This document shows positions 12,501-63,845 of a DNA stretch of 63,845 nucleotides, piece after piece. Origin of the DNA: Podarcis bocagei (Eukaryota); NCBI GenBank assembly GCA_964188305.1, contig OZ076885.1, one strand, 5' to 3'. Both the position numbers and the translations under genes were made by a program. A model generated the notes under the pieces. It was given only the letters and a program-made list of their open reading frames with translations, had not been told where the DNA came from and did no database searches. The first letter of the stretch is position 1; each line of letters starts with the position of its first letter.

Positions 12501-13799
12501 ATGAAGAGGTATGTGTTCGTGTATACACAATTGCTATTTTAATTTGTTAAAGTTAACATTTGGGGTCCTCAGTATTCTGTTTGGGTTGTAGACACTGGAT
12601 AACCAATTTAAACACAAAACAGGGCAGTGATCTTTTAGAAAACATTAATTAGTGTGAACACAAATCTGTGGAAAGTGTAATATAAATAAATGCATGCATT
12701 AACTGGCTGATAAACTAGCACAAGGACAATTAGCTCTGAGCTAACTTTTTAAAGTCTGGTGGAACAGAATAAACTCTGCTCCAGTAAAGGGGGGGGGGAA
12801 GGCTAGTGATTGAAAAACAATAACCCTGCAGTAATACATGAATGAATAGGTAGAACCAATATCTTCACTTGCTGCAAGCACACAACCTCCCCCAAGAAAT
12901 TAGGAAGCTCTAAGGGTTATGGGAATTGGAGTTCTGGGGGGGTAAACGATGGCTCCCAGAGGGGAAGTCATGTACTTTAAATGTATGGTGTGTACTCAAC
13001 CCAAGAATGAGTCGATCACTAGTGGTTGAGCACAGCAACCACAGAATATTACAAAATCAGTTATGGTCATTTGTATTGTTGCAGTTCACACATTTAAGAA
13101 GTGGAGAATTTGTCCACATTTTCCCTGTGGTAAATTGGTTGGCTGTATTTATCCAGAGTGTGCAACGCTTAAAAAACCTCTGATCATATTATGGATTGCT
13201 TCAGTTCTGGGTTTCTCGTGTTTTTTGTTTTTTTCATTTTTGTGTAAGGGGGGGGGGGGACCAGCAGCACCTCATCATTATAAACAAGCATAAGGGGAAA
13301 AATAGTATTCTTGGAGGAGGCTATATTATTAATAGACCCAGCTTTAAGAGTAGGCTGTCATTTATGTGCTCAGTGTTGAAAAACAGATAAATCTAATGTT
13401 TGCTAACCAGTTTTTATTGGAAAGGGAAGGGAAATTACATTTTTTAAAAAGTTTTATTTTATATTCTCACTGGACAGTTATTCTGTAATGTCATGCTTGA
13501 TTCGCTGAACACTCTTCAGTTGGGAAGATTCCACAATGAAGGGAGAGCACCTCAACGTGCATATTGATATGATGAATAATTTCTCAGTTGTTAAAACCTG
13601 CATTTTTGGTAGTTGTTTTCATTTGCTTGAGTTTTATGGAAAGGCAGGGAGAGCTAGTCATTGGCCGTTACCGAGATCTGGGTGAACTAGACCCAGCTTA
13701 GCTCTGCTCGCTTAGGTATTCAGTGCAGCACCAATTCAGATGAGGTGGGGGGATGTTTCAGTTTTCCATAAAAATTCCATGTCTCTCATTAGGAGACCA

Positions 13800-14053
13800 A
13801 ATAAATTAAAAAATTAAAAAATTGTCCAGTAGCACCTTAGAGACCAACTAAGTTTGTTCTGGGTGTAAGCTTTCGTGTGCATGCACACTTCTTCAGATAA
13901 ATGGTGTCTTCAGATGGTATCTAAAGAAGTGTGCATGCACATGAAAGCTTATACCCAAAACAAACTTAGTTGGTCTCTAAGGTGCTACTGAACATTGTTT
14001 TAAATTTATTTATTTATTTCGTCTGCGTCAGACCAACATGGCTATGTACCTGA
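13800..14053. mobile_element. Palindromic Penelope-like element remnant, copy 1
   Basis: Long inverted repeat plus a unique tail ending gaccaacatggcta; 12-bp TSD ATTAGGAGACCA at 13788-13799 and 14054-14065. Confidence 0.8.
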
Positions 14054-14756
14054 ATTAGGAGACCAGTCTGCCTAGGAGCTGGGTTTGAACCTGGTGTTGA
14101 GCATTGCAGACAGAACAGGGATGCTGTTGGTTTCCCTCTGCCCAGTAAGCTCTCTGACTTGAGAGTGAGAGTGGTCTGTCGTGTGGACTTGGAGAACTCC
14201 AGGACAATGGTGGGCTTGCCTAATAATGGGCTTGCCTAATAATGATGATGATGATATCAGCAGCAGCAGCAACAAAAATAATAAACAATAATAAATAATA
14301 ATTATCAATATCTTTATTGTTAAGTAAAAGAACTTTGTTTGGCTTGTGCTTAAGTCTGAAATATTGAAGTGCTTTGGTTTTGTTGTTACATGTACTGGTC
14401 TTGTAGATTCCATAAAGACTTATCAGATGTGGACAGTTGGTGTTGTTGGTATGAAAGCACAGAGGAGCTCTCATGTAGAAGGTTAATGGAGTGTAATTAT
14501 AAAGAAAAATGGACTGTTTGCCCACTCTGTCTCACTATACCTGCTCTGAGAGTGACAAGTACTTGATCTTGTGTAAACCCTAGAGCAGAGGTTCAGCTGT
14601 CTGAAATTACGACAGTGTAGCTGTCAGACGACCACACTATGAGATATGTGTGAACTTGGTAGGAAAGTTTTCATTCCATTTTGTAGGGCCTCCTTTTACA
14701 AAAGGCATTCTTAGAAAGCTCCTGTAAATTACAGTAGTTCTTCTGTTTTTAACATT

Positions 14757-22580: not shown

Positions 22581-23645
22581 CTAAGACTCTGGGGGACCAC
22601 TCGAAGAAGGCTCCTCTTCCACTCTTTGCTTCTTGCTCAAGAACCTGTCCATAGTCTGCTGCTTCATCCGCCTTTTCAGCACCTCCCTGAAAGGCAACAT
22701 GACCCTCGTATCAAAAATGTTCCCAACGTCATGTGCCACGTGCTTCTCAGGGTGGTGCTGCTCTGCAAAAGTCTGCACCTCCTTCCACTTCAGGCAAATG
22801 TCCCTCAGTTTTTCGGAGGACAGCCGTTCCTCAGTTGCTTCCTCCTCTTCCAGTGAGGCCTGCTCCTGCGCAGCCTCTGCCTGCAGTTCGACCAGCTCCA
22901 CGGTGGTCAGCTTGTCATCGTGCTCCTCCACCAGCTCGCAGACATCCTCCTCCGTGACCTCCAGGCCCATGGTCCTCCCCAAGGCAACAATGTCCTGCAC
23001 CACTGTTGACTCTGGTGCATCAGAGTCTCTTGGTGCCACACAGTCCGGCCACAGGCTGCGCCAAGCGCAATTCAAATTTCTCTGGCTGATCCCGTTCCAG
23101 GCCGTGGTGATCATCTTCAAGCAGGTGACGATGTCGAAGTGGTCCTTCCAGAATTCCCGCAGGGTGATGGTGGTGCAGTCAGTCACCTCGAAGCATCGCC
23201 TGAAAAGCTCCTTGGTGTAGAGTTTTTTGAAATTGGCGATGACCTGCTGATCCATCGGCTGGAGCAGTGGCGTGGTGTTAGGCGGCAGGAACATGATGTT
23301 GATGAAGCTGAACTCCTCCAACAAGTCCACCTCCTTGTCGATCTTGTGTCTCTTGAAGGCCCGTGGATTCTCTGAGTGGTACACCAGCAAGGGCTTGATC
23401 TTCAGGTCGCCGCTTGCGTTGGCACAGAAGAGCAGGGTCAGACGGTCCTTCATGGGCTTGTGGCCAGGCAACTTGGCCTCCTCCTGTGTGATGAAAGTCC
23501 TTCTGGGCATCCTCTTCCAAAACAGCCCGGTCTCGTCGCAGTTGAAGACCTGCTGTGGAACGTAGCCCTCCGTCTTCACAACCTCCAGGAACTCCGCTGC
23601 AAAGTCTTCAGCCGCAGAAACATCAGAACTGGCAGCCTCTCCATG
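22581..23645 (-). pseudogene. Tigger-type transposase remnant lacking the CENP-B/HTH DNA-binding domain and the second catalytic Asp segment
   Basis: HGEAAS, VFNCDETGLFWKRMP, KDRLTLL, YHSENPRA and LPPNTTPLLQPMDQ motifs; the DNAPxH segment is absent. Confidence 0.9.
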
Positions 23646-23646
23646 C

Positions 23647-24127
23647 CAGAAAAAAACACACAAGCTTCCAGATTCTTGCAAACCCCTCTCCAACTGTTTC
23701 CCCAGCCACCCAGCACACAGAAATTCAAATCCAGAATTTTTTTAAAAAAACAGCAGAGTGGCCCAATGGTCACAGAAAATCATAAAAATGCAGAAAAAAA
23801 CACACAAGCTTCCAGATTCTTGCAAACCCCTCCCCAACTGTTCCCCCAGCCACCCAGCACACAGAAATTCAAATCCAGAATTTTTTTAAAAAAAGAGCAG
23901 AGTGGCCCAATGGTCACAGAAAATCATAAAAATGCAGAAAAAAACACACAAGCTTCCAGATTCTTGCAAACCCCTCCCCAACTGTTCCCCCAGCCACCCA
24001 GCACACAGAAATTCAAATCCAGAATTTTTTTTGAAAAAACAGCAGAGTGCCCCAATGGTCACAAAAAATCATAAAAATGCAGAAAAAAACACACAAGCTT
24101 CCAGATTCTTGCAAACCCCTCCCCAAC
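23647..24127. repeat. 144-bp tandem repeat, about 3.3 copies, inside the Tigger element
   Basis: Unit starts cagaaaaaaacacacaagcttccagattc at 23647, 23791, 23935 and 24080. Confidence 0.93.
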
Positions 24128-35203: not shown

Positions 35204-35338
35204 CTGATGAAATGGACTTTAGTCCACAGAAGCTTCTACCATAATAGATTTGTGAGTCTTCAATGTGCCACAATTCTTTCTTTTCTTTTCTTTTTCTTTT
35301 TGTTGCGAGAGGTTAACATAGCTATCACCCTGCAAATC
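35204..35338 (+). mobile_element. Older degenerate Penelope-like end with a decayed hammerhead motif
   Basis: CTGATGA-AA-TGGAC-ttta-GTCCA-C-AGAA-GCTT followed by sequence resembling the tail of the palindromic copies. Confidence 0.55.
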
Positions 35339-36396
35339 TTTCAGAAAGCGCAAGCTAAGAAACCTGGATTCTGGCAGCTTGAGCAACACACAAAATCAAC
35401 TGGAACTAGTGAATCTCCCTCGGGGCCCATTTAGACAATATTCTACCATCAAAATTCTGATATTTTTTTAAGGGGGAGATCTTGGTTTCCCCTCTGCACA
35501 GGGAGAAGATATTAAATGAGCCAAGAGACTTCACTTTTTACTAATTTACTTACCGTAGTATTGTCAGAATCTGAAATGCTTTTTTGCTCCACTGTGGCTG
35601 TCCTTTTGCAGTCCATGTGATTCATGTACAGTGAAAGGGAATGAGGCCAAACATTGTCACACAGGTCTAGTCTCTTGAATTCTAAAACATGGTTAATGGA
35701 GTTAAGAAATCATAGACTGCAAATACTTGACCTGAACAGTTGTGCTAGATGAGATGAAAGTGAACTACTGCTTTTTGAATCTCACGGTTCTCATGCCCTA
35801 AAACTTTTTATAGCAGTCTAAGAATAGCATAACTTGGCTGTCTCTTTAAAATAGATACATACAGCTGTGATGTTCTGCGCAAACAGCTTATGCAGCAATC
35901 ATCTGGACAGTTCAGAAATCCTTGCTTGTGCTGGAAGGCTTCCATGTTTTCAGGTTTTGAGTAATCTCCAGTTAGATAACTATGGCTTTCATAATTCAAA
36001 TCACACTATGTTCTATTTTCATTTTCATAAAGTATAATGTTATTTATTATTTTATTCATTTATACATTGCTTGATTGTAAAAACAAACAAACCTCAAAGC
36101 AATTTACAAAACGATAAACCATAAAATCACGAGAATTTTACAATATATCTGATGCACATGCAAGTTTATACAGGGATTTTTTTTTTAATTTTTCAAATTA
36201 GTTTTGAATGGACAGCAAAGGCCTAGGGTGCAGCTGAACTGTTAGGTTCAGAGTTGGGGGCTATTTGTAAATAGTGGTCAGAGGAAGCTGAAATGCAGAG
36301 AAGTACAGACAGTGTATCTAATTAGCAGTGATAATTCACAAAGCAGTTGTTGGTAATACAGACATCCTAGCATAGTTATGCTAATTATCTTACTCA

Positions 36397-36512
36397 AAAT
36401 AAAAAAATTCCTTCCTGTAGCACCTTAAAGACCAACTTAGTTGGTCTTTAAGGTGCTACAGGAAGGAATTTTTTTATTTTGACTATGGCAGACCAACACG
36501 GCTACCTATCTG
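36397..36512. mobile_element. Palindromic Penelope-like remnant, copy 2, lacking the central ribozyme part
   Basis: Perfect 44-bp arms 36394-36437 / 36439-36482; same tail as copy 3; direct repeat TATCTTACTCA at 36386-36396 and 36513-36523. Confidence 0.8.
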
Positions 36513-36662
36513 TATCTTACTCAGTATGCTAACAAATATTTTGTCTTAGGTCAGTCCACAAGTGATAGCAATGTGCTTGATGTATTGTAATTCAGCAGTT
36601 ACAGGTGCAGCTAGTTTTAAATTGGTGTTTCTCTGCAGCAACACTTGTGTCTGCATCTTTTA

Positions 36663-38927
36663 TTTTATTTTTTAAAAATTTTTTATTGCAAGTTTCAAAC
36701 AAAGAAAAATCACCAAACATATACAATACCTTCACCAAGGAGTAACGAACAAAGAACAACATAAATAAACAGAAACATGAACATAAAGTAAAGAAAATCA
36801 TAACTTTTCATAACACATTTCTTCATAACTAACTGGACTTCCTCTCATCTCCCTTCCCTGCATTCTCAGTAATAAAGTTATATACAGCAATTTATTACCT
36901 TATTTCAGATCTTATTTTGTACTTCTCAGATATTATGTCTCAAACTTCAAATAATTTTTGTCAAATACTTATCAGCTTAGTTTAAACATAATATTACTTC
37001 AAATTTAATCCTTTTCTTAAACATCGCTTAGTCTCATGTGTCTTTCAACTAAATTGCTGGTACCATGTTATTTTCAATCGTGCAATTTCTTAACATTCAT
37101 ACAGTTTGTACTGTTTTGTAAATAGTCCTCAAACTTTTTCCAGTCCTCTTCCATTGTCTCTTCTCCCAAGTCTCGGATTCTGCCAGTCATTTCAGCCAAC
37201 TCCATATAGTCTATCAGTTGCGTCTGCCATTCTTCCAGTGTGGGCAAATCTTGTGTCTTCCAATATTTTGCGATGAGTATTCTTGCTGCTGTTGTTGCAT
37301 ACATAAAAAAAGTTCTGTCATTCTTTAACACTTTCTGGCCTACAATGCCCAAGAGGAAGGCCTCTGGTTTCTTAGGGAAGGTATACTTAAATACCTTTTT
37401 TAGCTCATTATAAATCATTTCCCAGAAGGCCTTCACTCTTGGACAAGTCCACCAGAGGTGAAAGAATGTTCCTTCAGTCTCCTTACATTTCCAACATCTA
37501 TTATCATGCAAATGGTATATTTTTGCAAGCTTGACTGGGGTCATGTACCAGCTATATCTCATTTTCATAATATTTTCTTTCAAGGCATTACATGCCGTGA
37601 ACTTCACACTGGTGGTCCATAACCGTTCCCAGTCAGCAAACATAATGTTGTACCTAATGTCCTGAGCCCATTTTATCATGGCTGATTTAACTGTTTCATC
37701 TTGAGTGTTCCATTTTAACAGCAAGTTATACATTTTTGAAAGTACCTTAGTCTTAGATTCTAACAATTCTGTTTCTAATTTCGATTTTTCCACCTGGAAA
37801 CCTATATTTTTGTCCAAATTAAAAACCTCCTTAATCTGAGCGTAATGTAACCAATCTCGCACTTTGTCTTTTATTTTCTCCAGACTCTGCAACCTCCAAG
37901 TATCTTCAACTTTTTCTATTATTTCCCAATACTTCGGCCATACGGCCTCCATATTGAGTCTTTTCCAAGCCTTAGCTTCCATTGGTGATAACCACCTTGG
38001 GGTCTTATTTTCTAATAAGTCTTTGTATTTTATCCAGACATTAAATATTGCTTTCCTGACAATATGGTTCTTGAAAGTTTTATGAACCTTTACCTTGTCG
38101 TACCACAAATAAGCATGCCATCCAAAAGCATTGTTAAACCCTTCCAGATCCAGGACATCAGTGTTCTCAATAAGTAACCAATCTTTCATCCAGCAGAAAG
38201 CTGCAGCTTCATAATATAACCTTAAGTCCGGCAGGGCAAACCCCCCTCTTTCCTTTGCATCAGTTAGTATTTTAAATTTTATTCTGGGCTTTTTGCCCTG
38301 CCAGACAAACTTAGAGATATCTCTCTGCCACTTTCCAAAACATTCCACTCTGTCCACAATCTGTAGGGTCTGAAACAAAAATAACATCTTTGGCAACACA
38401 TTCATCTTAATAGCAGCAATTCGTCCCAACAAGGAAAGCTTCAATCTTGACCAAGTTTCTAAGTCCTTTTTGATTTCTGACCAACACTTTTCATAATTGT
38501 CCTTAAATAAATTCAAATTTTTGGCAGTCAAGTTAACCCCTAGGTATTTCACCTTTTTAACCACATTTAAATCTGTCTCTTTCTGAAACCTTTCTGATTC
38601 CAAAGGTGTCAAATTTTTCCCCAAAACCTTGGTTTTTTGCTTATTTAATTTAAATCCCGCCACCCGACCAAACTCATGAATCAATTCTAGAACTCTTTTC
38701 GTACTAGATTCTGGCTCCTGTAGTGTTAAAACCAGGTCGTCTGCGAAGGCTTTAAGTTTGTACTGTTTAACTCCGACCTGTATCCCTTCAACCAACCGAT
38801 CCCCTCTAATCATATTCAAGAGCACCTCCAGGACCGATATAAATAACAGAGGGGAAATAGGGCAGCCTTGTCGTGTTCCTTTTTCAATTTTAAACTCTTC
38901 TGTCACCACATTGTTAACTATCAAGTT
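36663..38927 (-). mobile_element. 5'-truncated L1 LINE, antisense in a PHF21A intron
   Basis: ORF2 C-terminal part, 3'UTR and A-rich tail near 36663-36690; TSD TCTGCATCTTTTA at 36650-36662 and 38928-38940; TTTT/AA endonuclease site at 38936-38941. Confidence 0.93.
37074..38927 (-). pseudogene. L1 ORF2 fragment (partial reverse transcriptase plus C-terminal Cys-rich region)
   Basis: GTRQGCPISPLLF, FADD, KYLG, SLLGRI, GGFALPD and CWKC...HLWWTC motifs; over 600 codons without a stop. Confidence 0.92.
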
Positions 38928-39352
38928 TCTGCATCTTTTAACTCCCAAGTCCATGCTTCTGGGAGCCCTGGCCTTGTCAGGCTTTAGGAATCACGTATAT
39001 GCATCTATGTTGTCCAGCCTTTATGAGGTTGCTGTAGAAAACACTAGTGTCCCTGCTGCATAAAGACTTCTGTATAAAGTGTGGAGCTGCCTTCAGTCTC
39101 ATAGATCCACAGAGATGAGCTTGCCAACCCTCCCTTTTGAACTAAGGGATATGCAAGTTGTATAAAGAGACATAGTGCTGCTGTTTGCTTCATTTTATGA
39201 AGTGCCATTTCAGATATACAGGTGATGTATGTTTTTGAAAAATTGCTCAGTGAAAATTGTATCACTTTTTTAAAGCTACTATTTCACCTTAAAATAAGTT
39301 TAGTTCCTCTTTTAATTTGATTGAATTGTTTTCTTCTTCTTTTCTGATACAG

Positions 39353-49799: not shown

Positions 49800-49955
49800 G
49801 GTGATATCCATGAAGATTTTTGCAGTGTTTGCAGGAAAAGTGGGCAGTTGCTGATGTGTGACACGTGCTCACGTGTGTATCACTTGGACTGTCTGGACCC
49901 ACCTCTGAAAACTATTCCCAAGGGCATGTGGATCTGTCCCAAATGTCAAGACCAG
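49800..49955 (+). CDS. PHF21A: PHF21A PHD-finger exon ([52 protein letters not shown])
   Basis: C4HC3 PHD signature; acceptor ttttatag, donor gtattg; 156 nt. Confidence 0.98.
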
Positions 49956-51688
49956 GTATTGTTTGACACGAAAGGGGAAGCCTCTCGCAATGGTTCTCTG
50001 CTTTTGGACAAAATGGGTGGGGCACATGGCTTAGACTTTGAGAGGGTGACAATATCTGACCTGAACTGAAATGGCCTCACAAATTCAAAGCCATCAAACG
50101 TTTGCTTTTCTGTTCCACATCTCAGGGTACTAAACAGCCATTTATTTGCCATGGCAAAGCTCAAAGACTTACGGGGAAGATTCCCTTTGATCCACTTGCA
50201 TCTTTATCTATTTCTGCTTCCACAAAATAATGTTAGCTTCATTCTACAATACATGTGTTGGAAAGTCCAGTATTTTAAGGTCTAGGACAAAGCTACATGC
50301 TGGAAAAGCAATGTTTGCATGATAATGCAGGGACACAGGGCATTTTACAGGTGAGAGTTAGCAGGCATGAGATAGATGCTAAATCTTTCCCCATAGCTGG
50401 CTCTGAGAGCAAAAATAAGCCCAGCTGGGGAGGAACGTTTTGTGATGAATAACCACATGATTAAACACCCATCTCCCACCCACCAATTCTCTTCTGGAAA
50501 TGCCCCGCTACTCCTGCATTGCTGTTAATCAACAAACACATTTGTGGGAAATGCATGTTTGCCAAAGTAACATGTAGTTTTCTCCATGGAGACTGCTCTT
50601 TGCTATCAGAGTGTTTTTCCTTTAGCTAATTAGATCAGCAGTTTGTGAATCATGAAGTCACAATCCTCTCTACTGGCAAGTTTTAAGATCAGATATGTTG
50701 TCTCTTCATTCCTGTTCAGCTTGTTAAAATTTCATCAGCAGAAAATGTTTGTAGATGCAAGGGAATGTACAAAATTGCTGACATGGTGATTAAACAGGCT
50801 TCCCTTGTGGGAGGTTTAGCATAGATGTGTGAGTATTTCATGCTATTAAATCTTGAGGGTCTTCCCAAACTATTGTGGAGGTTTTTGTGTGTGCAGTAAA
50901 TGCAATGTTTACTTGCTTGAGGTGCGTGTTGAGTTGTGGATCAGGCATCTTTTTTGGATAATGCTTCTGTTGAAGAATTTCCCCAGTACTCAAACCTCAG
51001 TATTCTTTTGCTTGGAATTTCCTTCCCCTCTCCCCCCTCCCCATTTCAGCATACTATTGTGAGTGCTGTGTATAAGCTGGTTTTGAATATCAGAGGCACA
51101 TATGTTTTAGTGATTAGTAACACAATTCCCCTTCTTCCTACCAGCGCCTCACTATTTTGTTATCCATTTAGGGATTTTTATTTTTTTTTAATTAATTCTT
51201 TAGGGGCTGAATGCTTGCCTGCTGAAACAACCAAGCATAGAAATGATCATGTAATTGCCTTCATTTTGTTTTTTAATGTAGACTTTAAAGCAACAAGGCT
51301 ACCCTTCCTTACCATTTTATGAAATTTATGTTTTTTATTTAGTTCTTGAAAGGTTACGTGTTATCCCCATGCACTTGATAGCACTGCAGCACAGTCTTCC
51401 TCTCCCTCCTTTTGATATGTGGATATAGTCTGGTTCATTTCTCCTTCCCATTGGCCTCCCACATCCATCACATGTCAACAAAGCATCAGGCTTCTTGTCC
51501 CGGACCAGAACTAGCAGCAACCCAAGAGTAGAACAAAGGGGGATTTTAAGTTGTTTTATTGCCTGGGAAGGGCCTAAGAAGAGAATGGCATTGATTTTAA
51601 TAGTTGTTGTGTAAGATACCCTTTAGTGTGTGTCATCTTTCCTGGAGGTAGAACATGTCAGCCAAGTGTTCCTTCTCCTTTCTTTCAG

Positions 51689-52598: not shown

Positions 52599-52856
52599 AA
52601 ATGTATGGAAATGAAGAACACCATCCTGGCAAAACAGAAGGAAATGCACAGTTCATTGGAGAAGGTAAAACAGTTAATTCGCCTCATCCAGGGCATCAAC
52701 CTTTCAAAACCCATAAACTCTGAGGGCAGTTCCGTCGCCATCTCCAATGGCATGGACTCCACCAATAACGCAAAGGCTGCCGCTGCCTCCACCCCAGCCT
52801 CTTCCCCCTCCCAGAGCTGCATGGTGAACTGTACCAAGGGCGACGAGACTAAATAA
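52599..52856 (+). CDS. PHF21A: PHF21A last coding exon ([13 protein letters not shown]...KGDETK*)
   Basis: Translation ends at TAA 52854-52856; acceptor gcttcag. Confidence 0.96.
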
Positions 52857-53058
52857 CATAGCACATGAAGAAGGAGCCGGGGGAGATGGCGGCGAGGCAG
52901 AAGAGCAAAACAATAAAACTCTAGAAAAGAAAAGCTGGATTTCTTCTGGAAAGCGCAGAACTCTTTGGTTCCAGAAAGAGCGCGAAGAGGCTTGTGCCAG
53001 GCGGCACCAGAGTTGCCAATCGATCCTCCTTATTCTGTGTGTACGTGCAAAGTTTGGA

Positions 53059-53234
53059 NNNNNNNNNNNNNNNNNNNNNNNNNNNNNNNNNNNNNNNNNN
53101 NNNNNNNNNNNNNNNNNNNNNNNNNNNNNNNNNNNNNNNNNNNNNNNNNNNNNNNNNNNNNNNNNNNNNNNNNNNNNNNNNNNNNNNNNNNNNNNNNNNN
53201 NNNNNNNNNNNNNNNNNNNNNNNNNNNNNNNNNN
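53059..53234. other. N-run (176 nt gap or mask)
   Basis: Directly visible. Confidence 0.99.
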
Positions 53235-54052: not shown

Positions 54053-54212
54053 NNNNNNNNNNNNNNNNNNNNNNNNNNNNNNNNNNNNNNNNNNNNNNNN
54101 NNNNNNNNNNNNNNNNNNNNNNNNNNNNNNNNNNNNNNNNNNNNNNNNNNNNNNNNNNNNNNNNNNNNNNNNNNNNNNNNNNNNNNNNNNNNNNNNNNNN
54201 NNNNNNNNNNNN
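54053..54212. other. N-run (160 nt gap or mask)
   Basis: Directly visible. Confidence 0.99.
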
Positions 54213-57168
54213 TTTTAACACAGGTTTTGCTTATGATGTTGCCATTCTGCTGTGTTTCTGTTTGAAAAATGCCTTGGGGGTGAGTGTCGAGAGATTGTCA
54301 TGCCATTCAAATAGCCTGTGGGGTTGAACTGCATCCAATCTGCAAACCTTCCTCCAACTGGTGGAATCTCTCCTCTGTTAAGCTCTCCTAATTAACTCTT
54401 GTGCTTAAAAGCACAAGAGAGCATTGGCAGCATTTAAAAATCTTTGTCGTTATAGCACCTAGATTATAGGGAGAACGTGGAGACAAAGGATTTTAGCGTT
54501 GGGATCTGGCTCTGCTTAGCACAGCTTGTCTGTCTTCTGAAGCAAATTGTCGCAGTAATTTCATGCTATTAAAATGCTGGTGCTGGACATGAGATGAGCG
54601 AGTCTGAAATAGCCACCTTTGCATAGACAAGTGCAAATGGCCAATATTTCATACCCTTTCACTTCCATGGCAGCACTCATGTTGGCGTAAGTCATGGCAG
54701 TCAGCCCAGGTCCATGTTAGAAAGTCTCTCCTCTGTCAGACAGCCAGTGATGGTGCTGCCGTGCTTTCACTATTATGTGTTGAAGAACTATGCATCCTAA
54801 TGCACTTTATTTACATAATCATCTGAATTTTGTTCCTGCCACTCATTGTTTGTGGCGGTTTCTTTACTTCTAGCCTCCAATCTTGTCCCTCAAGGACTCC
54901 TCAGTGACACTCAGTTATGCTCACGGTCCAGCAGCTGATCTTTTATCATTATACATATCAGTGAAGAGTAAGGACAATTCGTGTCAAATAGCCTTAGCTT
55001 TACGTTTGAAAAAGATCAGGCCTTACCATTTGACTTTTGATACTCCATAGTGAAGTTGGCAGCTTTCTAAGTACCTGGTGTTATTAGCAAGTAAAGCCAG
55101 AAGGCAGCCAATCAGGAAAATTGCTCAGAGGAAATAACACTTTTTATAGCAATACACAGAACAAAATATCATTGGGGGCATGTTTGAGAGGCCTTTTCAT
55201 CTTGTGACCTACCAATACAAATGTAGCCCACCAGATCCCTGATAATCCTAGTTTTGCCTGCCTTTGAGTGCAGCAAACAAGCAACCGTGTGTGTTGGGTG
55301 GTTTGCATTTGGCTTGATGGGTCACGCAATTTGCAAACCTACATTTAGATATTCTGAGTGTAATGGGTGAAAAATAGACAAGTCCTCATATTTCAGGCCA
55401 GAAGCTGGATTTCCAGCAGCAAGGAACAGGAGGAAGCCAATTACCCTCTTCTGGTTGATAAATTGGTGTTGGCTGTTGACAGAGGCAGGCGAATGGGATT
55501 TCTGATTTCAGCTGTTCCCATGTGCATGTGGCCCTTCCTTCCCCTCACCAAACACACTTGCCATCCTTGTATTCTTTTCCCTTAAAGCCATAGGTTCATT
55601 CAGAATGGCCACACATGCATGAATTTGGGCAGTGGCTATCATGCCCTCTTAGCCTATGATGTAAGGTGCAGGGAGTGCAGAACTATTTGCTTTATCTTAA
55701 ACATGGAACAGGTGCCAAAAACAGGTGATCTTGTGTTGAATTCTCTGCCTCCTTTGTGTTTCAGGCCATAAAAATTTGTACCACACAGAGAGGGAAGACT
55801 AGAGCTCAGTGCAAGGCTGTTGTTGGGGGAAGGGGAAGAGAGTCGTGTGTTGATCTGTGCTGAGGAAGGGGCATTTGTCTGCTACCTTCCACTTTAAAGC
55901 AATTTAAAAACTGTGCCTCAGCAAAGTAGTATTAATAACATGCTATCTTTATGCCCCCACAATGGGGCTGACAGTTGGTCCCTGGTACTTTCTGAAGGGA
56001 AAACAATTTATTATACAAAGGTCTCCCATGTGTTGAAACCCTGCTTTGGATTTAGCCATGGGATTTTTTTTGGGGGGGGGATTACTTTACATTTGGCCTC
56101 TCTTGACTAGTGACATCTGTGGTATAACTTTGCTTAGCCTGCAGCACTGGAGTGATCAGCTAGTTTAAAGTGAAGAGCAGCAAGGTACTCTTGTGAATCT
56201 TTAATTTTGTCATTCTTCTGATTTTGTGTGTACTTCTCTCCTTGCCCCTTCACCCCCGCCTCGCTGGCATCTCCTGTCCTGGAAATGCCACCAGCTAAGT
56301 TTAAGAGGGATTTGGCTTCTGGAAATATAGCCAAAGGAGAAAATAAAGTTTGGGCATGTTTTGTTTGGCTGTGCAGAAAGATCCTTGCTTGGGTAGCAGA
56401 TGTGTCAGATTTCCTTTTGCCTTGAGAAAACGTAGGGGAACCACAGTATCTTTGTTCATCAGGGTATCAAGTTTGTCACCCTGATTTTCTTAGAATTCAG
56501 AAATATAATTAGTACTATGAGAGGACAGTGTTCTGCACCTGAAGGCTGGATCCTAGCTAGTTGCTTGCATGCAAATGACATTGCCTCTTTACATCCTACT
56601 CCTAAACATTCTGCAGGAGTTGCCTGCTGCTGCCTTGGCTCATTTGTGGTACGCTGTGTGAACGTCAGGGTGTACACTCATGTGCTGGTGCAGCAAAGTC
56701 CAGAGAGTACCCATCCATATTTGAGGTTGCAGCCGGGAGTTTTTATTTGCTTATTTGCAATTGAAAATGGAAAGAATGGCTTGTGTGGTCAGACTCCATT
56801 AGTAGTTATAAGGTGGAACCTATTTGAACTTGTGACTTTTCTGACACTAAAGAAGTCTTGTACCAGATTTACATCTTTTTTTTTTTACTGAAGAGGCACT
56901 GTCACAAGAATAACTCCAGCTTCCTAGTTGTTGGGAAATTGCAGCAAGCATAGCCCATGCATTTGTGATTGGAAAATACAAATTAGAAGATGATAGTCGG
57001 TACTTGTGCAAAAACAACATTTCTCTCATTTGGGCCAACAATTCTGTGTACTATCTTTACTGCTTTTATTTCACTTCTTTCAAACCATTTTAAGTCTGAC
57101 CATTATTTATGTCAAAATAAAAAAATTCTTTCCAGTAGCACCTTAAAGACCAACTATGGTATGGTATG

Positions 57169-57206
57169 GTATGAGCTTTCGTGTGCATGCACACTTCTTC
57201 AGATAC
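57169..57206 (-). ncRNA. Minimal hammerhead ribozyme motif, mirror copy
   Basis: Exact reverse complement of 57228-57265. Confidence 0.7.
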
Positions 57207-57227
57207 ACAGTGTGTATTCTTCAGTGT

Positions 57228-57265
57228 GTATCTGAAGAAGTGTGCATGCACACGAAAGCTCATAC
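57228..57265 (+). ncRNA. Minimal type I hammerhead ribozyme motif (Penelope-type)
   Basis: GUAU-CUGAAGA-A-GUGUGCAUGCACAC-GAAA-GC-UC-AUAC: stem I GUAU/AUAC, intact core, palindromic stem II, minimal helix III. Confidence 0.72.
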
Positions 57266-59169
57266 CAAGAACTAACTTAGTTGGTCTTTAAGGTGCTACT
57301 GGAAGGAATTTTTTTATTTTGACTATGGCAGACCAACACGGCTACCTATCTGTAACTGGAACCATTATTTATGTAACCTTTTAAATTCCCCTAAAATGTG
57401 ACTGCGGTTCATGACCCCAGCCCCAGCACTGTAACGCTGCTATTTTAGTTTGGTGCCCTTGGTCAATCCAGTAATGCAGTGTACATCTAACAGCGTCCCC
57501 AGTCAAACAGGTTTGCAAATGCAGCTGTTTCCTGTGTCCCACACACTGCTAGGTTTAAGGGGGAAGTCCCACAGTTGTGTCTGGGTCCAGGGTAAGCAGA
57601 AATGCCTACCCCCCCCTCCCCTCAAAAAAGTTTAGGAGGCTTTTTTTTACTTGTTTTCTAATATGTATGCAGGTTAGAACAATGCTCAATTACGTGCTAA
57701 ATCCCGGTTTAACCCTCTGCAAATGACATTGCAGGTCACAAAAACAGAAAGGCCTAAACTCAGTGACAATTACAGCATCTAATTTCCCTCCCATCCCATC
57801 CCATGAGGATGATAAGAAGCCTCTTTGTTATGGGGTCTATAATTTTGCCCAGGTGCTGAGTGTTTCTTTACATGACCAAGAATGGACAACAGCAAACATT
57901 CCCAGGTGAAGCTGTCATTATCTGCATCAGTGTTGGCAGCTTTTAGAAATAGCTCTGCACAGCACCTCCATTTTTATTGTGGTTGGAATAAAGTTATTGA
58001 CCCTGGCATTTATCATCCCCCTTCCCCTAGCACATACTCCTCTTGAGTTTAGCCAGGGCTCCCTTTGCAGCTCAGTTATGTGAGCCTAGAGGGTGAGTGT
58101 TGAGTCCACCATCCACTCCCCCAGCAATAAGCGCTGTACCTGCATCCCAGTCTGCTGGGGAGTCTGCTCACTCCACAGTGCCACACCTGTACATCCCCAC
58201 AGTGAAGGAAGGCGCCTTGTTGAGAGAATGTGCTTTAGCAAGGATTGGACTAAGCTGGTCCTTCACTCTTCCTATGGCATGGAACAACAGCAGGGGTCTA
58301 CACACCCTTGCTGGTTGCATTGGAGTCTCATGAGGACACCAGTTGAAAAGTCCTATTAGTGCCAATTTACATTATGAACAACAGGCCTGTGAGAAGTGAA
58401 CCAAGACAAGAACGGGCATTATCAATAAAGTTTTATCTTGAAATTGTATGTCAGTTTGGTCATATCCGAACTAGCAAATACTGAATAGTCCTTAGCTTTT
58501 CTACTCTGTCAAGTCCAAGTGGTTTGTTGGATGTTACACTCACCTGTGGCTTATGTTGTAGTTTCATTCCATTCTTCGGTAGTAGAGGAACCGGCAGTGA
58601 GCTGCTTACAAGCCAACTATCCCATCTGTGTCTCAAGACCATTGTTGAAGCCAGAATATTTCTAGTAACTGGAATAAGGACTCTTTGAAATAAGTGGTCT
58701 GTGAAAGAGGCCATGACCCTAAAAGGAAATTCACAGCCTTTGTTTTTAAGGCAGTGGGTTTCTAAACCCTCCTCCCCCATGTACACTGATGTATTGATTC
58801 ATACATAGCCAGCATCCTCCCATCTCTTCTTCTCCTGATGTTTGTGCCAGATAAACTCAACCTCACTCGTGCTGCCTCTGCATCCATCCTGAGTTCCCAT
58901 ACCTTTAAGTGAACTGGGCACAATATTGCTTTCACAGATCAACACCCTGTGAATGTTATATGGATGCATGACTTCTGTTGGTTAGGTGGGTTTCTTTTTT
59001 GTTAAGTTTTTCTTTTTCTTTTTTTAAGAAATTGAATAGCCTGGTGCTCATAGTGATTTGCAGTCTCTTTGCTGCCTTCTTTTCTGTAGCCTTCCAGTCC
59101 CTTGTGGGTTTGGTACAATTGTGTCTAGATTTTAGTCTATTAAGGTGGGAAGAAAAAGAAGGGGTCCAG

Positions 59170-62848: not shown

Positions 62849-63046
62849 TCACAGGCTTCTCTCGGCAGTGAGGTATTTGAGTGCAGCGGCGCCATACTTG
62901 CGCGACAGGTCCTGGTGGAACTCCTCCCGCAGGGTCTCCAGGCAGTCGCGGTAAGTGGAGCTCAGGCGGAACTTGGAGATGTCAAAACTGGGTGCGTGAG
63001 GCATATGGATCATGAAGGCATTGGGCAAGACCAGCAGCTCATTCTC
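62849..63046 (-). CDS. LARGE2: LARGE2 (GYLTL1B) last coding exon ([27 protein letters not shown]...[10 protein letters not shown])
   Basis: C-terminus of the LARGE-family glucuronyltransferase domain; acceptor tttttgcag on - strand; LARGE2 rather than LARGE1 from known tail-to-tail adjacency to PHF21A and residues YRDCL, FHQDLSR. Confidence 0.92.
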
Positions 63047-63168
63047 CTGCAAAAAGGCATGAAGTTGCTAGAAAGGCCGGCTCCCTCGGAAGCCACACAC
63101 CCCAGCCCTGGATTTCTGGGAACGCATAAAGAGGCAACCTTGCAGGAGACATTAAGCAGCACACTCAC

Positions 63169-63364
63169 CTGGGCGTCAAGCTCCATGATGTGAGACACCT
63201 TGTTCCAGCCGAAACCGACAAATCTCTGGTCGTACAGGGGGCAGTCGCGCCTCACTACAACGTAAGGCTCAAAGTGCAGCTGCCACTCCACGCGATAGGG
63301 CACCGTGGCTGTCCGCCACTTGGCATAGTCCGTTGGGGCATGGCCCTGAGGCCACACATGGTAC
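63169..63364 (-). CDS. LARGE2: LARGE2 penultimate coding exon ([20 protein letters not shown]...[18 protein letters not shown]), 196 nt
   Basis: FEPYVVV and GFGWNKV motifs of the LARGE GT49 domain; gtgtgcag acceptor, gtgagt donor; 122-nt intron to the last exon. Confidence 0.93.
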
Positions 63365-63404
63365 CTGCACACAGATACACAAGGGAGCTGAGAAAAGTCT
63401 GCAC

Positions 63405-63457
63405 CTCGGACTCCTTGTCTCCTAGTCTGACACTCCGACCACTGCACCACACTGGCT
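63405..63457 (-). mobile_element. tRNA-derived SINE head fragment in a LARGE2 intron
   Basis: Minus strand agccagtgtggtgcagtggtcggagtgtcagactag (A-box-like). Confidence 0.5.
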
Positions 63458-63845
63458 GGGGTAGCCAGCCTCTTAGAGCCATTCTGAACCTCTTTAGTCA
63501 GCAGGGCAGAGTTGGGCTTGGATGAGGGAGATGGGCCTTCATGTCTTAGATTTGCCACAGACCCACAGCATGGCCAGGGCAAAGTCACCTTGGTCTCAAC
63601 TCCCCACCTGTAAAATGGCAATGATGCAAATATGCCCCTATGAGTGCACAGCTGTGCCCTAACAGGTGACTGGGAACTGGATGAGCCCAGGACTGAGGAA
63701 AAGGGCATGAGGAAAAGCAGAAGAATCATAGGATCCAATGAAGAGTGGGGGGGGGGGCGGCGGGTGGAAATGAGGAAAGGGACTATTTATTTAAAATATT
63801 TGTACCATGCTCGGCACGGGGCTCCAAAGCAGGGAGAGGAGACAA

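Follow-up and report, generated by a model that had tools for sequence, protein, structure and literature searches.

A probable Penelope-like foldback insertion with minimal hammerhead motifs on both strands downstream of PHF21A in Podarcis bocagei

Penelope-like elements (PLEs) of metazoans carry a published minimal hammerhead ribozyme (min-HHR; Cervera and de la Pena 2014, PMC4209133), which was found in reptiles and not in mammals; pairs of min-HHRs on opposite strands, 100–700 bp apart, have also been reported (PMC4209133). PLE insertions are often 5′-truncated and have an adjacent inverted, likewise 5′-truncated copy, a tail of 30–40 bp at one end and a target-site duplication (TSD) of variable length (PMC8557442). 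The protein of a PLE from the anole cuts and extends both target strands, and its reverse transcription starts at two adjacent internal sites, the distance between them being the tail (PMC11167929). Here, we compare these systems with a 248-bp insert (57113–57360) located downstream of the PHF21A coding region in a 63,845-nt stretch of the Podarcis bocagei genome (GCA_964188305.1, OZ076885.1; hereafter the window), which was studied by sequence analysis of both strands. Very probably, this insert is an ordinary young head-to-head PLE fragment with the usual min-HHR of the family on each strand, the ribozyme being an inert passenger.

Insert architecture and hammerhead motifs

The insert is bracketed by an exact 14-nt direct repeat (57099–57112 and 57361–57374), its TSD, and contains two inverted repeat arms of 102 nt each (57111–57212 and 57222–57323) that are 91% complementary at a spacing of 9 nt. 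Seven of the nine mismatches between the arms fall inside a microrepeat patch (57157–57166 vs 57268–57277), and outside of it the arms of this insert, here denoted copy 1, differ at just 2 positions. Perfect duplex extends over 43 bp (57225–57267, spanning the entire hammerhead) and over another 27 bp of the hairpin. The original prediction, made from the sequence alone, had described a TSD-flanked foldback element whose left arm supplies an AATAAA at 57116 and a TATGG microrepeat that breaks the symmetry. The exact repeat and the mirror arms bear out the first point, and the hexamer and three TATGG units (57155–57169) were found as described; the hairpin, estimated there at roughly 90 bp, measured about 100 bp. 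Slippage during replication or reverse transcription on the ATACC of hammerhead helix I is a plausible origin of the microrepeat. The features of copy 1 are, from left to right:

57099–57112, no strand: left TSD copy, 14 bp (exact direct repeat)
57113–57212, minus: left arm, an inverted 5′-truncated element copy without tail (inverted repeat and alignment)
57116–57121, plus: AATAAA hexamer, the reverse complement of the T-rich tract of the element (sequence)
57155–57169, plus: three TATGG units replacing 11 nt of the arm at unchanged arm length, the sole internal bubble (alignment)
57169–57206, minus: minimal hammerhead motif (motif match, descriptor)
57213–57221, no strand: 9-nt turn joining the arms (inverted repeat)
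57222–57323, plus: right arm, a sense element copy (inverted repeat and alignment)
57228–57265, plus: minimal hammerhead motif in PHF21A sense (motif match, descriptor)
57324–57360, plus: 37-nt tail, single-sided, without left counterpart (alignment; same tail in copies 2 and 3)
57361–57374, no strand: right TSD copy (exact direct repeat)

A 34-nt core string matched with 0 mismatches at 57232–57265 on the plus strand and at 57169–57202 on the minus strand, against a chance expectation of 0 matches. Including the GUAU/AUAC of helix I, an identical 38-nt motif is present on each strand (plus 57228–57265, minus 57169–57206), and a generic min-HHR descriptor returned only these two motifs from the whole window and none from 200 shuffles. 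Read in PHF21A sense, helix I comprises 4 bp (57228–57231 with 57262–57265). It is followed by the CUGAAGA box, an unpaired extra A57239 and a helix II of 5 bp, which is formed from a 14-nt perfect palindrome (57240–57253) and starts with the pair G10.1–C11.1 (G57240–C57253). After GAAA, the AGCU at 57257–57260 is the entire helix III, providing A15.1–U16.1 and G15.2–C16.2 (G57258–C57259) with no loop between them. C57261 occupies position 17 (H17), which places the predicted cleavage between 57261 and 57262. All core positions of the min-HHR are thus found, namely C3–A9 (CUGAAGA), G12–A14 (GAAA), A15.1–U16.1 (U57260) and H17 (C57261), as are the further features given in PMC4209133, at A57239, G57240–C57253 and G57258–C57259.

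Compared with the metazoan PLE min-HHR (PMC4209133; Lunse et al. 2016, as cited in PMC6765202), the motif shares the type I topology, the core boxes, the extra nucleotide after A9, the G10.1–C11.1 pair, a palindromic 15.2–16.2 without loop 3, a short helix I, a long helix II and the occurrence as opposite-strand pairs. There is no notable difference; helix II is here a 14-nt perfect palindrome. Judged by these sequence features, the hammerhead is the published PLE min-HHR. Core match and descriptor confirm the two mirror hammerheads of the original prediction at their positions, its helix III reduced to the palindrome AGCU is all that is present, and its predicted cleavage after C57261 agrees with the assignment of that nucleotide to position 17. 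It had further assigned the motifs to the Penelope type of minimal hammerhead, thought to act as dimers, and this identification was right, the features matching those in PMC4209133. Canonical type I hammerheads (Rfam Hammerhead_1, HH9, HH10) have the same catalytic core, whereas their helix III stem-loop is missing here. The motif string gave no match in a literature text search or in the supplements of PMC11167929.

Probable origin by a Penelope-type insertion

Two further copies of the element and one relic were identified in the window:

13788–14065, plus: copy 2, older, same layout, in a PHF21A intron; 12-bp TSD, arms 13810–13899 and 13918–14007, hammerheads decayed (motif search, alignment)
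35204–35331, plus: old single-arm relic of a related subfamily, no mirror arm (sequence comparison)
36386–36523, plus: copy 3, truncated further toward the 3′ end and without hammerhead; same tail and mirror arm, 10–11-bp TSD (alignment)

Copy 2 has 90-nt arms and a tail of about 36–40 nt; its identity to copy 1 is 86%, and CpGs have been lost. Both of its hammerheads are damaged: in one arm G5 has changed to A, while in the other helix I is broken. Copy 3 shares 98.7% identity with copy 1 over 78 nt. The relic retains a decayed hammerhead core with a CUGAUGA box, the extra A and a damaged GAAA, and its helix II differs in sequence yet is still self-complementary, which fits the covarying subfamilies reported for such motifs.

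When the six arms are aligned, the mirror arm always has its outer end where the T-rich tract stops, and every copy bears its tail on one side only. Tails measure about 36–39 nt across the three copies and the TSDs 14, 12 and 10–11 bp, while the inner arm ends are common to copies 1 and 2 and lie elsewhere in copy 3. Arms within a copy are more alike than arms across copies, and private substitutions are common to both arms; therefore, every foldback was formed upon insertion.

Although copies 1 and 2 stem from separate insertion events, their inner ends coincide (57211–57240 and 13904–13930). In both, the tail-bearing unit extends ~21 nt further 5′ than the mirror unit, and this extra stretch contains TTCTTCAG (57217–57224), a complement of the CUGAAGAA box that follows 7 nt downstream. 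The turn of copy 3 falls at another short native palindrome, AACTTAGTT. Turn points may be set by such self-complementary spots of the template (n=3).

These properties correspond to those of described PLE insertions (Evgen'ev and Arkhipova 2005; Craig et al. 2021, PMC8557442; anole Poseidon ‘PAc’, PMC11167929). Shared are a pseudo-long terminal repeat (pseudo-LTR) hammerhead (PMC4209133), variable 5′ truncation together with an inverted copy directly upstream (PMC8557442), a tail at one end only, which at 36–39 nt lies within the 30–40 bp range (PMC8557442, PMC11167929), and a TSD of variable length (PMC8557442). Further shared points are AT-rich targets, with an ATT at two of the three sites, and a distance of about 100 nt between the hammerhead and the 3′ end of the insertion.

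Copy 1 would accordingly represent a young 5′-truncated insertion, the source being either a PLE or a short non-coding element that a PLE enzyme had copied. Its content would run from the pseudo-LTR end that bears the hammerhead to the start site of reverse transcription. Integration would have given the family-typical head-to-head structure flanked by the 14-bp target duplication, in which one complete 3′ end bears the 37-nt tail and the adjoining mirror copy ends at a second, inner start site. By analogy with the anole PLE in vitro, the cause would be a PLE protein that cuts and extends both DNA strands and uses two adjacent start sites. The hammerhead motifs would be passengers, intact on both arms through youth and not through selection. 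Copy 1 is young, since it is 98.7% identical to copy 3 and only two arm differences lie outside the microrepeat patch, and its intact cores need no selection because, with the arm divergence seen, it is no surprise that two 38-nt stretches are unchanged.

Some results weigh against this origin. Neither a PLE reverse transcriptase nor a GIY-YIG endonuclease was found among the window's open reading frames (ORFs) of at least 90 aa, and the link to an autonomous PLE therefore rests on structure and literature. Downstream of the hammerhead, all three frames are closed within about 20 codons. In the anole PAc the ORF begins inside the hammerhead (helix II), whereas the downstream region here is non-coding in all frames, so that the family is either a non-autonomous PLE passenger or a PLE with a different layout; on account of the closed frames, we also rejected an anole-like arrangement in which a PLE ORF would begin in the 3′ part of the element. 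Finally, the Rfam hammerhead models (Hammerhead_1, HH9, HH10) gave no match in the whole window at the gathering threshold, and no hammerhead family scored at E ≤ 10 on 56900–57600; those models need a helix III.

Two other kinds of mobile element come close in structure. Animal non-LTR retrozymes (PMC7229834; bioRxiv 10.64898/2026.07.22.740005) are likewise short and non-coding, carry type I hammerheads and are related to PLEs. They are, however, direct tandem repeats that give circular RNAs, whereas the locus contains a single head-to-head insertion with TSD; with its two motifs on opposite strands and no tandem copy, we rejected membership in this group. Long inverted arms with a direct repeat on both flanks would also be expected of a foldback DNA transposon (miniature inverted-repeat transposable element) with long terminal inverted repeats, in which the hammerhead-like boxes had arisen by chance. 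This is scarcely credible, as the TSD length varies (14, 12 and 10–11 bp), the 36–39 nt at the right end are absent from the left, the inner arm ends of copy 3 shift while the outer ends stay fixed, and the motif agrees with the PLE min-HHR in every detail (PMC4209133).

Gene context and fate of the ribozyme in host transcripts

PHF21A lies on the plus strand: a PHD-finger exon (49800–49958) matches PHF21A structures (2puy, E = 1.6e-33), and the last coding stretch terminates at the TAA at 52854–52856. On the minus strand, a LARGE-type exon was found within 63013–63738 (E = 4e-36 to LARGE1), and the last coding exon of the LARGE family (62852–63067) ends just above 62851, in line with the PHF21A/LARGE2 context of the original prediction. 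The insert is situated 4.26 kb beyond the PHF21A stop and about 5.5 kb beyond the LARGE2 stop, inside a 10-kb tail-to-tail gap. Candidate poly(A) hexamers on the plus strand start at 52912, 53578, 56342, 57116 (within the insert), 57987, 58424, 59170 and 59208. The 1.4 kb that follow the PHF21A stop include two runs of N (53059–53234 and 54053–54212).

Other repeats were noted further upstream. A PHF21A intron contains a 370-aa ORF (22581–23693, minus) with a DDE_1 transposase domain of the pogo/Tigger type (E = 9e-21); a 144-bp tandem repeat (23647–24127; 3.3 copies, 97% alike) overlaps the start of this ORF. At 37074–38954 (minus), a 626-aa ORF with the C-terminal half of an RVT_1 reverse transcriptase domain represents a fragment of a long interspersed element that is still largely open.

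In published work, cleavage in vitro was undetectable for single min-HHRs and slight for dimers (PMC4209133). The hammerhead of the anole PLE depends on the element's own protein for cleavage, and RNA-seq gave no reads ending at the cleavage site (PMC11167929). According to predicted folding, the element RNA forms a single long hairpin with a minimum free energy of -161.2 kcal/mol (z = -20), in which 30 core nucleotides are paired with a probability of 0.9996 on either strand; forcing 57228–57265 open would cost about 72 kcal/mol. The AGCU cannot self-pair within one molecule, and helix III therefore needs a second sense copy, whereas a host transcript would contain one sense motif and one antisense copy. 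Even two free units would favour a helix II duplex over the double hammerhead because helix II is a perfect palindrome (-34.4 kcal/mol for the best dimer fold vs -12.7 kcal/mol for the double hammerhead). Moreover, transcription of either strand reaches the antisense arm before the sense motif, which would leave no co-transcriptional window. A host transcript would thus carry a lone sense motif that has no helix III partner and is paired to the antisense arm, and the expected product would be a stable RNA hairpin of ~100 bp without self-cleavage. On these model grounds, the ribozyme is almost certainly locked in the hairpin and inactive; we infer both that host transcripts would run through the insert and that they would stay uncut.

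These considerations bear on the suggestion in the original prediction that the insert is a latent switch, i.e., that a hammerhead in a long isoform of the PHF21A 3′ untranslated region (3′UTR) is freed by editing, helicases or alternative polyadenylation. In its favour, both strands have an intact catalytic core, the insert is located past the PHF21A stop and ahead of the candidate poly(A) hexamers at 57987, 58424, 59170 and 59208, and the anole PLE hammerhead can cleave when its protein is present (PMC11167929). However, helix III is impossible with one sense copy per transcript, single min-HHRs are inactive in vitro (PMC4209133), opening the duplex carries the cost given above, and the antisense arm is made first, so the emerging motif would be captured. 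The same structure occurs again in an intron of the same gene, and youth explains the intact core. The switch is therefore unsupported and highly improbable: what is present is a routine PLE structure, found three times in the window, with one motif that lacks helix III and is paired at 0.9996. The insert might instead act as a plain double-stranded RNA (dsRNA) element that undergoes A-to-I editing or is processed by Dicer, or it might donate a poly(A) signal, the AATAAA at 57116, and so create an early 3′ end. The great stability of the hairpin (z = -20) with its 43-bp and 27-bp perfect stretches, the scores of generic microRNA-precursor models and the position of the AATAAA 4 nt inside the left end speak for such effects. 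Yet these microRNA scores reflect hairpin shape only and, save for a borderline mir-1, remain far under the family thresholds; the region downstream of the 57116 hexamer is not notably GU-rich (score 8 vs 17–18 at 56342 and 59208); and side effects of this kind would be expected of every one of the many copies alike. We consider it unlikely. Very unlikely is also a reading in which the insert is part of an expressed long PHF21A 3′UTR isoform and affects the mRNA either as an edited or diced dsRNA of ~100 bp or, in cells that produce a PLE protein, as a hammerhead assisted by this protein. Altogether, a regulatory reading of the insert is unlikely, and an ordinary young PLE fragment with an inert ribozyme remains by far the preferred interpretation.

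Among the microRNA-like candidates, the precursor families MIR1222, mir-3149 and others were rejected as structural look-alikes (68.6 vs 90 bits, 53.6 vs 100 bits). Further hairpin-shaped Rfam matches at E ≤ 10 on 56900–57600 were discarded on the same ground. mir-1 reached 45.7 bits against a gathering threshold of 45.6 bits (57180–57254, both strands), in a permissive local scan only, and was rejected as well, its mature sequence being different; an Rfam scan of the whole window at gathering thresholds returned nothing, mir-1 included.

Implications for the annotation of lizard genomes

PLE foldbacks with min-HHRs are an already known kind of object, both the structure and the ribozyme motif having been published. 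As a further representative of an abundant lizard repeat, the insert itself matters little. Its value lies rather in annotation: intact-looking hammerhead cores and scores from microRNA models make such copies mistakable for ribozyme switches or microRNA genes, and false microRNA calls are likely to arise from PLE hairpins. Should protein-assisted cutting of the host message nevertheless take place, retroelement activity would become linked to how much of a chromatin regulator is present. If such hairpins in lizard 3′UTRs were edited, diced or cut, this would constitute a genome-wide effect of PLEs on host messages and not one specific to this locus.

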